Positions 2,331 to 15,300 of a stretch of 64,000 nt of DNA are shown here, one piece after another. Positions within the stretch are counted from its first letter, which is position 1. Each line of letters begins with the position of its first letter. This DNA comes from Macrostomum hystrix (taxonomy: Eukaryota > Animalia > Platyhelminthes), in NCBI GenBank assembly GCA_950097015.1, contig CATNEN010000002.1, forward strand, positions 3,348,001 through 3,412,000, given 5' to 3'. The notes under the pieces are model-generated. The model did no database searches. It was not told where the DNA came from and saw only the letters and a list, made by a program, of their open reading frames with translations. The translations under genes were made by a program, and so were the position numbers.

Positions 2331-3495
2331 GCTTTTGCCATTTACTTGATATCTCACGCCTGTTATCCATGGCAATCTAGCGCTATGTCTTAGATTTTTT
2401 CAGTTTTTATTATATATTTTTTGCTTCGTGTTTTCTTCGAAAAAAGCTTTTGAAATATTGAAAACATATTCGTAACTGTCCTGCTTAAAAACACGCAAAT
2501 TCTAAAAAAGAGTAAAGATTCAGCTATGAATAAAATAGCTGATGACAAATACAAGTACCTTGTCTTGAAATGATTGTAGCAATGCTCAAAAAGTTTTCCT
2601 TTCGTTTTGAAAATAAAAAACGCTAACAGCAAAGTATGCTCGAACAGTCTTCATATAGTTTTGAATTTAATCGAATAGTGCTTGAAAGAATGCAATTAAA
2701 AACACAAAAATAACTCATGAAAAAAGCTTATTGCTTTGCTGAAAGCATTTTCTTTTATTTGTGAATAAAAGACGCTGGCAGCGAAAATTATTTTCTCAGT
2801 TTTGTATCGAATAAGAGATGCGTCTGCAATCGAAAAAAATATTATTTTAACATTTTCTCAGAGCGAGAAGAATTATTAAGCTGACAAACATTTGCCTCGA
2901 CAGTAGCTAATCAAAAGCGCTTACTATTCTCAGGTAACTGTACCCAAATAGCCCAATAAAGAAAAAATTAGAATGATCTGTTATCTACGTTTTTAACTGT
3001 TTTTAACTATAATAAAATATTATCACCATGTGACGTTGTCTCTCTAATTTAATGTAATTTTAATATGCTATTTCTAATTAAGTGCATTATTTTCGTTAGA
3101 TATAATTGTTAGAGATATTTATTTGGTTTTACATTAATATTTATAATGAATTTGTTTTAGTATACTATATAGTCGTATTCAAAGGTTCTAATTAGGCCTT
3201 TCCAGGAAGACTCTCTCTCCCCCCGTGCCTGGTTCTGGTGCTACGACTGAGTGCTGGCTATTATTTAAGTGTGGCTAATTTCAACTGTAGCCGTAACTGC
3301 TTTCAAGTGAATCTTGATTCATCTAACATATCTCTAAGTCATATAGCCAGCATTCACCGTTAAGCGATCTCGTTATTTGAAGACCCAATTTACTGCCGAA
3401 TAATAATTTACCTTACTGCTATTCAAATAGACCGAACCGCTACGCCTATACATTGGGACCGAAACTTCGTCATAACCAGTTCCAATAAACTTCGG

Positions 3496-12373: not shown

Positions 12374-15300
12374 TCAGAGTCGACTCTTAAGCCGAAGTGC
12401 AGACAAACGTGCTCTCTCCGCGTTCCAGGTGCTCGTAAATTCCGCCTTGCCGAGAGAGTTCTCAGCAGAGCACACGTAGGTGCCATACGCGTTGTCGCGG
12501 CCGATGTTCTCTGCAGGTGAGAAGGTTTCAAGCAATGAAAATTTGTTAGTCAAAATTCAGTGTCTCACTACAGCCAATGCCTTCTGACTAGCTTTCCTTA
12601 GAATATCTGGCTTAGATAAATGAATTCTAGTGTCAATATTGAATTTGTGCTTGCTAGGCGATTCTATTTCTTCGCGGAAATTCCATGGACTGCCCATAGT
12701 ATTTTTAGCACACGGGAAAACCACTTTACGTGATGCCTTCAGCCAATGGGAAAACAGGAATCATTTTCTCTATTCCCATGTCCCAATTTGTAAATGCAAA
12801 TTTGATCATTCGGTGGAAAATAGTCAAATTATATTTTAGAAAATAATTATACAGTTTTTTACTTTTGATAATTTTAACAGTCTCATAAGCTATATTTTGG
12901 CTTCTCTTTAGAGTTTTTTTCACAAATACTTCGGGTGTGTCATAAGTAATGTCACTGAGGGTAAAACAGACCAACTAACAATCGCAGATGAACGAAACTG
13001 TATCAATCAACAACATAGTGTCCCCCAATATCAATCACCCTCTGGCAGTACTCGTACAGCTTCTCAACCTTGTCTTGATTTCTTATGCTACAAATTGAGT
13101 CCTCGCAGTAAGAGCCCGTTCATACGGCAGTGAGCCAATTCAGGCCGAGAGTTAAAATATATTTAAGTTTAACAGAGCGATAAGGAAGGGGGTTGGCGGT
13201 ACGATAACAAGAGTGCGCGACTGAGGGTAGGAGAGGAGGCTAGAACGTGAGCGGCGGACCAATCAGAGAGGAGGAAAGAAAGAAAGGATAGAGAATGAGA
13301 GATCAGCCGCAGAGATAACGAGAGAGAAAGAACTAGATTGAACTGGACGATGTAAACAAGAAAAGTGCAGAGAACGAAAGAGTGAATAGAGGACAGAAGG
13401 CAGAGACGAAAGTCGCGACAACCTCAGCCTGCAGGTGTTTTTCCTCCAGCTGTCGGAACCAGTGCAACGCGGCTTCTTTGACCTCATCATGGTTTGCGAA
13501 ACTTCTCTGGGAAAAGTCTGCCTTCAGCCATTTAAAGAGAAACCTGTCGCACAAGTTGAAGTCTGGGCTGTAGGGACTCTGCCAGAGCAGATTTACTCGC
13601 CGTCCAGCCAGAAAATCCGAAACAGCCTGACAGGTGTGGGGCCGTGCGTTGTCCATCTGTCACAGAACTTCGTTCAGGTGAATCGGGTTTGACCGGAGCG
13701 TGCGCCAGAGTTTCCCAGTGTGTCGGACAAAGTCGATGAAGTACTGGCCATCGACCTTGGTGTTTGGCGGATTTGTACAGATGGAGACTCGTTTGTTTGG
13801 CTTGAATGCCACCAGCAGCATGGTCTTCTTGTCTGAGATGGACCTCCTGGTCACAGTCAGCCTGGAGTCCCCAGCTCCCAGCCAGCAGCGATTGTCTGCC
13901 TTGCTGCTTTTGCCATCCAGGTGGAGCCAGGTCTCATCCTCAACAACCAGGCAGTTCAGGATGTCATCCAAGCCCCGGCTGCTGAACACCTTGCGGATCT
14001 GATTGGCGCAGTTCACACGGGCCTGACGTTGGTCCGCAGTGAGGTCATGGGGCACCCAGACCGAGCAGACGTTTCGGAGATGGAGATCCTCTGTCAAGAT
14101 GCGATGGACTGTCTTGAAATCAATCTCCAAGCAGTCCGCTAGCTCCCTGACAGACTGCCGCGGGTCTTCCTTGACCAGGTCGCTGATGACTTCGATGTTC
14201 TCTATTGTCCTGGTTGAACATGGTCGTCCAGATCTGGCGGCATCTCCCAATTCGAACCCAGGATGAGTAAAGTTCTGAAACCACCTGTAAATTGTCCTGC
14301 GAGTTGGGCAGTTGTCTGGCAGTGTGTTCCGGAGATCCTCCTCTACTTCAAGTGCAGATTTTCCAAGCTTGAAGCGAATGAAAGCGTAGAACTGGATGTG
14401 CGTCTTGTCGTGATTCATGTTGAGTTTTGCTCGTTGCAAAAAGAAGATTTCATCGCGTTGCGCTTGCTAAATCTGATTAACAAATTCTTGCGACAGTTTT
14501 GGCCATAGACATTAAAATTGCTGCTCAGGTGTGGTGGCGACTTCTCAATAAATGTACTTTCAGAATATAATATATTTGGATGATTATTGCTTTGGGTTCC
14601 CGCACAACAACCACAGTGACATTACTTATGACACACCCGTAGTATCTAACCAATAATAATAATTAAAATTATTTTATTAAGGCTATTAAGGCCTTATCCT
14701 CTTAATGCTGCGTCGACCGTTCGGCGCCACACCACCCTCAATTACCCCACGTAATGCTGGTACCATGTAACAAATGTATGAACTGAAACAATTTAGAGAG
14801 CAGTGTATTGCTAAAAAACATAAATTGTTCACTATTAGAGTCGGGAATCGAACTTCCGACCTTTAAGTCGAGAGCTTCACGCTCTAATCACAAAGCTTCA
14901 ACCACACGCGCTGATTGGTTGAACCAATCAATCTAGATAAAACGAGTAACAAGTTCACAAACCTATCTACCAGCTGTGTTACTTCCTTATCGCTCCTTTC
15001 CGATTGAGCAAGCGAGTTCATGTTCTTTCCTTACCTTTTGGTAGTCTGAAATGGAAGGGGTGTTAGAATAGCCTTTAGGATCTGTTTGTGTACTTCAATT
15101 CATTAAACCACAATGCTTCTAAATCTAAACACTCACTTGTAAACTAGCTGCGACCCGTATGTGTTGGAGCTCGAATTGCTGTAGTAGGCCTCCTCAAACT
15201 GCCTGATCCACCTTGGGGTCTCCAGTTGAACATTGTCCGCGTCGCGCCTGGTAATATCCAGATCCGGGTACGGGTAGCCGGTAACGATGCATTTTAATTC

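Follow-up and report, generated by a model that had tools for sequence, protein, structure and literature searches.

Several retroelements are known to be connected with spliced-leader (SL) sequences or with SL trans-splicing. According to the passages of PMC3636483 and PMC4640811 that cite them, SLACS, CZAR, CRE and NeSL-1 are elements without long terminal repeats (LTRs) that insert site-specifically in SL RNA genes. The ta-TRIM elements of taeniid cestodes (PMC4558846) are short and non-coding, consist of LTRs, a primer-binding site (PBS) and a polypurine tract (PPT), are represented by many solo LTRs, and interact with host trans-splice acceptors. Dinoflagellate retrogenes carry relict spliced leaders (PMC6050394, PMC5585692). 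In parasitic flatworms, 597 discarded SL loci with partial leaders were found mainly in association with LTR elements or long interspersed nuclear elements (PMC12582326, Mol Biol Evol 2025), and a 2025 account of 137 LTR families in Macrostomum lignano leaves the SL unmentioned (PMC12801592). In this report, we describe a solo LTR of the free-living flatworm Macrostomum hystrix that ends in a copy of the entire host SL exon. The LTR lies in a stretch of 64,000 nucleotides (positions 3,348,001 to 3,412,000 of contig CATNEN010000002.1, assembly GCA_950097015.1), hereafter the window. We think it likely that the exon was captured by way of RNA, that it has since been inherited within the R-U5 part of the LTR, and that genuine SL sequence occasionally overwrites it.

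Each of the known systems shares some property with this locus. As with SLACS, CZAR, CRE and NeSL-1, a retroelement is physically tied to SL sequence; however, those elements, as described in the passages cited, target SL genes, whereas the family in the window carries a copy of the exon and inserts elsewhere, for example into a mariner remnant. The LTRs of ta-TRIM supply splice donors that compete with the SL and contain no SL themselves. In contrast, the window family contains the SL, and it has 350-bp LTRs and a repeat-filled interior of 1.4-1.6 kb. In dinoflagellate retrogenes, as here, a DNA-encoded leader marks passage through a trans-spliced RNA and reverse transcription, and leaders can be stacked or refreshed. 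Those are retrocopies of host genes, however, whereas here the leader has been built into the terminal repeat of the element itself and is passed on with it. The flatworm loci of PMC12582326 are partial leaders that are situated in retrotransposons and, like the sequence described here, lack other SL RNA features, and one sentence of that paper proposes the same origin that we favor. The original prediction, made from the sequence of the window alone, knew of no SL embedded in an LTR. That remark softens the claim of no precedent. The paper includes no element anatomy: placement relative to R-U5 and the PBS, family analysis, mosaic copies and free-living Macrostomum are all absent from it. Four things are new: the complete SL exon forms the R-U5 end of BEL/Pao LTRs, many families have this arrangement, one carrier of the leader is non-autonomous and very young, and refreshed and mosaic copies record ongoing exchange with the host leader.

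The solo LTR occupies 350 bp on the minus strand of the window (13071-13420). Read in that orientation, the insertion begins with TGTCGCG and ends with AAGACA, and is flanked on both sides by AGGT (13421-13424 upstream and 13067-13070 downstream). This target-site duplication (TSD) is exact over 4 bp, or reads AGGTT if the first T of the LTR is counted; TSDs of 5 bp are found at other copies. Within U3, a TATA-like sequence, TTAAATATA (13158-13166), is a putative promoter motif kept in all 26 distinct full-length LTRs that we compared and in related families. An initiator-like TCACTG (13128-13133), whose A at 13131 is the predicted transcription start, follows at a spacing of 30 nt, counted from the first T of TATATTTT to that A. 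Related families have TCAGTG or TCAGG in the same spot, immediately 5' of the SL-derived block. The block itself (13084-13128) is a 45-nt copy of the host exon, from its first base to its last, without donor or intron. Inside it, a 21-nt core (13092-13112) matches the host SL at 20 of 21 positions and is the best-kept part across LTR families, a ranking affected by the way in which those families were ascertained (see below). A GTAG variant (13088-13091) creates TTTGTAG/CATAAG, a plausible 3' splice site after GTAG that 10 of the 26 LTRs have, the window copy among them. A 13-nt U5 tail ending in CA (13071-13083) completes the last 58 nt of the LTR, and in full-length copies the PBS, TGGCGCCCGAACG, comes directly next. 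When these landmarks (TTAAATATA, TCACTG, the SL-like block and the tail) were re-read, all of their originally predicted positions held on the minus strand.

The similarity of the block to the SL is strong. The 35-nt M. lignano SL given in PMC8629364 agrees with the version that the original prediction had given. The M. hystrix leader assembled from RNA reads consists of this 35-mer and a 5' extension, CGTAAAGA, for a total of 43 nt, and the M. cliftonense leader has the extension GCCGTAAAGA and a length of 45 nt (supplement of PMC10468722). Because these RNA-assembled leaders carry 5' extensions, the prefix CCGTAAAGA of that prediction is also right. Positions 13118-13084 match the 35-mer at 30 of 35 bases, as had been stated, and 13128-13084 match the 45-nt exon at 37 of 45. 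The best match among 20 shuffled windows was 23/35. When the genome was searched with the core pattern and up to two mismatches, 290 matches were found, versus none with the reversed pattern. Chance similarity was rejected on the basis of both comparisons. Elsewhere in the window, a weak second leader-like stretch occurs on the plus strand (3365-3399; 24/35, versus 23/35 for the best shuffle) and could represent the remains of a block within an ancient repeat.

Genuine SL RNA genes look very different from the block. In these genes, the exon is followed by GTAAGACACC, which contains the GTAAG donor, then by a second hairpin, a single-stranded Sm-like AUAUUUUUAG and a third hairpin. The 110-nt RNA adopts the canonical three-stem fold (z -4.3; none of 200 shuffles was as good), in which ACGG pairs with the intron. 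The genes reside inside an 11.6-kb ribosomal DNA (rDNA) unit, after 28S and a U1 small nuclear RNA gene, in arrays on C15, C17 and C42. For example, the rDNA locus L067 (G000:C15:9000-18999) has an SL gene near 666-775 and U1 at 1068-1230, both on its minus strand. An exact 44-mer of the leader occurs in 20 places in the genome, 17 of them within rDNA arrays and 3 within LTRs. The upstream and intron sequences of the genuine gene show no similarity to the LTR. In the window, the block ends in ATA in place of the exon-final ATG, is followed directly by AGAAATCAAGACA rather than GTAAG, and lies only 13 nt from the LTR end, with neither a GT donor nor an Sm site on its 3' side. An SL RNA gene or pseudogene was thus rejected as an identity for the block, given that donor, intron, Sm site and three-stem fold are all missing, and the earlier view that this is not an SL RNA gene stands on both the donor and the Sm/three-stem evidence. 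The 5' hairpin proposed at the same time fared less well. The CCGT-N4-ACGG sequence is present, but its stem is a mere 4 bp, and the predicted 61-nt leader transcribed from the LTR folds no better than shuffles (z -0.76). The stem is kept, with altered loops, in the clade of the window copy; no compensatory change was seen, and it is not kept in other families.

The window copy belongs to a real and recently active LTR retrotransposon family, so that its interpretation as a solo LTR is borne out by its relatives: it has TG...CA termini and a short TSD, and the same sequence occurs elsewhere as direct terminal repeats. From 184 first-look candidates, at least 40 scored genomic copies of the 350-bp LTR share 95-100% identity. 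Six copies are full length (L061-L066; 2.05-2.27 kb), with LTRs of 350-351 bp in direct pairs 1.7-1.9 kb apart, 5-bp TSDs, the PBS immediately 3' of the 5' LTR, and a PPT, TTTTTTGGGGGAG, preceding the 3' LTR. We take the PBS to be of the tRNA-Lys type, presumably one base different from that of HIV-1. Just after the 5' LTR in L062, L064 and L066, the PBS is doubled (LTR end ACA, a PBS variant, ACA, and a second PBS), and two PBS variants are in circulation within the family. The two LTRs are identical in four of the six full-length copies and differ by one base in another and by seven in L066; the identical pairs imply recent mobility. Given the orientation that the PBS and PPT define, the block is sense-strand sequence at the extreme 3' end of the LTR. 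As the original prediction had anticipated, it is present in both LTRs of every full-length copy, 3' of the TATA-like and initiator-like motifs and 5' of the 13-nt tail and PBS.

The interior of the element (1.4-1.6 kb) is composed of tandem repeats, and its open frames are only repeat-derived, without a domain-bearing open reading frame. The family is a non-autonomous LTR element, possessing LTRs, PBS and PPT without coding capacity, and is presumably mobilized in trans. A likely source of its proteins is L071, a 5.9-kb element on C39 that encodes DUF1759, RVT_1 and Peptidase_A17 domains, the signature of BEL/Pao elements. No integrase domain was detected in the last 308 residues of L071. The last ~120 bp of its LTR, including block and PBS, are 95% identical to those of the family. 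Shared cis sequences are the only link between L071 and the non-coding family, and they suggest that the family is related to BEL/Pao. Copies of the family are dispersed and have varied TSDs. The rDNA units that house the SL-gene arrays are not its insertion target, and no LTR of this family was found in them.

The block is not confined to one family. Among loci picked by exact match to the core (about 190 further core matches have one or two mismatches and lie outside the loci read), at least 10 further LTR types carry it in the same position. Their common layout is a TATA-like motif, an initiator-like TCA(G/C)NG, the block, an 11-13-nt tail ending in ACA, and the PBS. In a second BEL/Pao element (L069), an exact leader is followed by a 48-nt tail and then the PBS. 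A search anchored on tail and PBS, instead of the core, gave five hits, versus one in the control, and these included a family whose leader end is exact and another whose core has diverged. One tail-anchored element has the leader-ATG fused directly to AAGTCATTACA and the PBS.

Leader copies also occur in other contexts. At L045, L060, L083 and L072:5630-5745, a complete mature tRNA with its CCA lies in antisense orientation directly 5' of a full or 5'-truncated leader copy. This tRNA-then-leader order, seen in the repeat family of those four loci, fits neither strong-stop product. Dispersed leader copies joined to other sequences, some of them 5'-truncated, are found at L075, L056, L079 and L051/L077. 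Two of these lie in another repeat, in which the leader continues to ATTGCA and is followed by GAGAKTACAAATA. These loci could be retrocopies, or they could belong to further element families in which the leader is at the 5' end.

Comparison of the 26 distinct full-length LTRs and one truncated copy (L086) revealed that four copies contain host-type SL sequence in part or all of the block. The solo LTR L046 (TSD AGGGC) has a whole genuine SL followed by CATAAG, which leaves a 4-nt surplus after the ATG. Another solo LTR, L030 (TSD ACATG), is a mosaic whose 5' part is host-type (AAAGACGGTCT) and whose 3' part is family-type (GAGGAC, GTAG), and the 5' LTR of L066 is a mosaic of the same kind. 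L086 has a genuine SL and is then truncated. The sequence after its leader, which was evaluated as a possible captured host mRNA, is unique in the genome and non-coding, with no open frame. For the block itself, a retrocopy with a relict SL was rejected, since the leader adjoins the LTR tail and PBS and not a host gene. All four host-type tracts start at the first base of the SL, the partial ones are on the 5' side, and none includes intron sequence. Because their U3 backgrounds differ, the four copies seemingly reflect separate events.

In L046, the junction itself is informative. Trans-splicing at the TAG acceptor of a copy like that in the window yields exactly the L046 sequence, and it seems, from this correspondence, that at least one element RNA had its SL-like block swapped for a real leader and yet finished retrotransposition. 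A nearest-neighbor analysis of U3, applied to find a GTAG-type parent of L046, gave distances of 2-4 bases, which are too small to decide. In L066 (G000:C15:173103-176269), the 293 nt of U3, with their private variants, are the same in both LTRs, and all seven differences fall in the last 58 nt, which marks block and tail as a unit with a history of its own. The 5' polarity of the host-type tracts is that expected of strong-stop synthesis, which starts at the PBS on the element RNA and could then, inside the homologous stretch, switch to a host RNA that carries the SL.

In all contexts, the sequence starts to resemble the SL gene at GCCGT, where the mature leader has its 5' end, and ceases to do so after the final exon base. 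Such limits indicate a spliced RNA product and not a piece of the gene. Capture from a trans-spliced RNA is, as judged from sequence comparison, a well-supported proposal. The exon-exact limits and the refreshed copies make reverse transcription of a trans-spliced genome, which had originally been offered as an alternative, the best-supported origin. How the exon was captured, where transcription starts and what part the block plays in strand transfer we infer as follows. An ancestral element RNA would have been trans-spliced a few bases (~11 nt) 5' of its PBS. The fusion of leader-ATG, AAGTCATTACA and PBS described above is what such a splicing event and subsequent reverse transcription would leave. 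Reverse transcriptase would have copied the leader into strong-stop DNA and thus placed it in both LTRs, and thereafter the block would be inherited as part of the LTR, with the last 58 nt constituting R-U5 copied from the RNA's 5' end.

At present, the block is probably transcribed from the LTR's own TATA-like and initiator-like motifs, so that the element RNA would start 3 nt before the SL-like sequence. Copies with identical LTR pairs retain without change eight family-diagnostic differences from the SL, represented by the ATGA loop, GGGCT, GAGGAC and GTWGCATA, which implies that the block is usually copied from the element's own RNA and not spliced on at each cycle. In turn, this places the RNA start at or upstream of the block. 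The refreshed copies imply that the block is within the part of the LTR derived from the RNA 5' end (R-U5), where it exchanges with host SL RNA. Genuine SL sequence occasionally replaces the block, because the latter retains its homology to the leader present on thousands of host RNAs. Two routes are conceivable: a template switch in the course of strong-stop synthesis, or a fresh round of trans-splicing at the TAG acceptor found in many copies, that in the window among them.

These properties might also couple the elements to host trans-splicing, an extension that we regard as tentative and rather doubtful. An RNA whose leader had been swapped, either at the TAG acceptor or where a host promoter drives read-through into the copy, would stay replication-competent because a genuine leader could still pair with the 3' SL-like repeat. 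Copies could therefore move without a promoter of their own. Moreover, reverse transcriptase could hop between element RNA and SL-bearing host mRNAs, and these families would then generate retrocopies.

Several observations weigh against RNA capture followed by inheritance in R-U5, or against details of that reading. A TATA-like motif lies ~70 nt 5' of the block in several related families, not 30, so a transcription start at the block is not general. No AATAAA is visible in the LTR to place the boundary between R and U5, and the block could sit mostly in U5. Textbook reverse transcription predicts identical LTRs, and the pattern in L066 consequently needs an extra event. The first capture requires strand transfer without R homology, which is rare. 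Element sequence in public data consists of four 2020 runs that were kept as contigs and have no recorded library type; LTR, interior and several flank-LTR junctions are represented, and because flank-to-U3 junctions are included, these contigs, in which no SL joint or transcript end is seen, are uninformative on the start site, on strand and on expression. Finally, the mean minor-allele frequency within the family is 0.030 in the block and ~0.010 in U3, a difference that arises partly through the refreshed copies. Within the family, then, the expectation that the block would be more constrained than U3 is not borne out.

Conservation between families bears on why the block persists. Eleven families were compared whose sequences immediately 5' of the block are otherwise ~34% identical. 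Over the 21-nt core, identity to the host SL reaches 99%, compared with 67% for the first 15 nt of the block, 70% for its last 8 nt, and ~30% for the 30 nt upstream of the block. This contrast is inflated because loci were chosen by exact core match. Ascertainment alone is nevertheless an unlikely explanation, because ~2 of 10,000 lineages would be expected to retain an intact 21-mer when divergence is 33%. The alignments thus suggest core-specific constraint across families. One hypothesis that would account for it, which is compatible with RNA capture and concerns maintenance of the block, is that an SL-like RNA start aids translation, export, stability or escape from surveillance. The invariance of the core in families that are otherwise diverged is what such mimicry predicts. 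The exon-final ATG is also gone in most families (replaced by ATA, AAG or ACA), and this change, which would remove an upstream start codon, is expected if an upstream AUG harms translation of gag. However, core invariance was set aside as proof of selection, weakened as it is by exact-core choice of loci. The tail-anchored search did recover a family with a diverged core, and the greater variability of the block relative to U3 within the family also argues against selection. An LTR transcript made by RNA polymerase II would bear an m7G cap, as opposed to the trimethylguanosine of real leaders, and this too counts against selected mimicry, which we consider rather unlikely overall. A somewhat better, though still doubtful, possibility is that the block is a passive relic of one capture that persists since R-U5 is obligatory, with no function beyond that of a terminal repeat. 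It agrees with the variability within the family, with the free drift, between families, of the 5' hairpin and 3' ATG portions, and with the lack of significant structure in the predicted leader. It does not readily explain why, across families, the core has been preserved so much better than the remainder of the block, a point weakened by ascertainment, nor why ~4 of the ~30 family copies read were reconverted to host sequence, which indicates that the similarity has consequences for replication.

Two further explanations involve the SL RNA gene itself. The leader could act as a core promoter element, downstream or intragenic, that sets the start of transcription at the leader's own 5' end and is exploited by the LTR. 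Reportedly, Hannon and colleagues assigned such an intragenic role to the Ascaris SL RNA gene in 1990. In most families TCA(C/G)NG lies directly 5' of the block regardless of how far away the TATA-like motif is, which is consistent with this idea. So is a T-rich motif, GGCTTTTTGGTTGG, located ~25 nt 5' of the rDNA SL gene in L067, which resembles GGCCTTTTGGTTCG, equally far from the block in LTR family L074. However, that likeness is 12 of 14 bases between T-rich sequences and may be due to chance, and LTR elements regenerate U3 and need no internal promoter. We therefore judge a promoter role to be improbable. An origin at the level of DNA, by insertion next to SL RNA genes or by ectopic gene conversion, would have donors available in the multicopy SL genes (at least 17 in rDNA arrays). 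In contrast to what such an origin would leave, intron, Sm-site and SL-promoter sequences are in no copy, the limits of homology coincide with the mature exon across many unrelated contexts, and the genuine leader in L046 stops exactly at the final exon base. In addition, SL genes are confined to the rDNA units, where no LTR of the family was found. A DNA-level origin is, in our view, very improbable.

The host sequence around the solo LTR is a remnant of a mariner/Tc1-type transposase, also on the minus strand. Its N-terminal part (13660-14439; Pfam HTH_48 (Mos1) and HTH_32) is followed by a DDE_3 part (13421-13656; Pfam DDE_3, E 5e-8) that extends up to the insertion point, and the final codons resume beyond the LTR (13003-13070). 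Excising the LTR and one AGGT rejoins the transposase frame (...LQAEVEKLYEY...). Owing to its AGGT duplication, the insertion reads ...GAG/GTTGTCG...ACAAG/GTTGAG (13067-13424) and is bounded like a GT..AG intron; its removal would restore the transposase frame. The same mariner remnant, solo LTR and flanks occur 31.7 kb before the window copy (L002; G000:C2:3329348-3329719), with 99.7-100% identity. The two loci are a local duplication that postdates the LTR insertion.

These findings have practical consequences for work on Macrostomum. SL-based annotation of trans-splicing and searches for SL genes will catch hundreds of LTR-borne leaders; outside rDNA, all three of the exact full-length leaders found are in LTRs. 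Transgenesis exists in M. lignano, and reporter work is thus feasible. More generally, the elements show a concrete route by which a tag of host RNA processing is built into the structure of a transposon and inherited with it, and natural records of the templates chosen by reverse transcriptase survive in the refreshed and mosaic copies. Should the leader benefit the element RNA, a novel form of host mimicry by retrotransposons would be involved. A leader that serves only as a terminal repeat would still link retrotransposition to trans-splicing.

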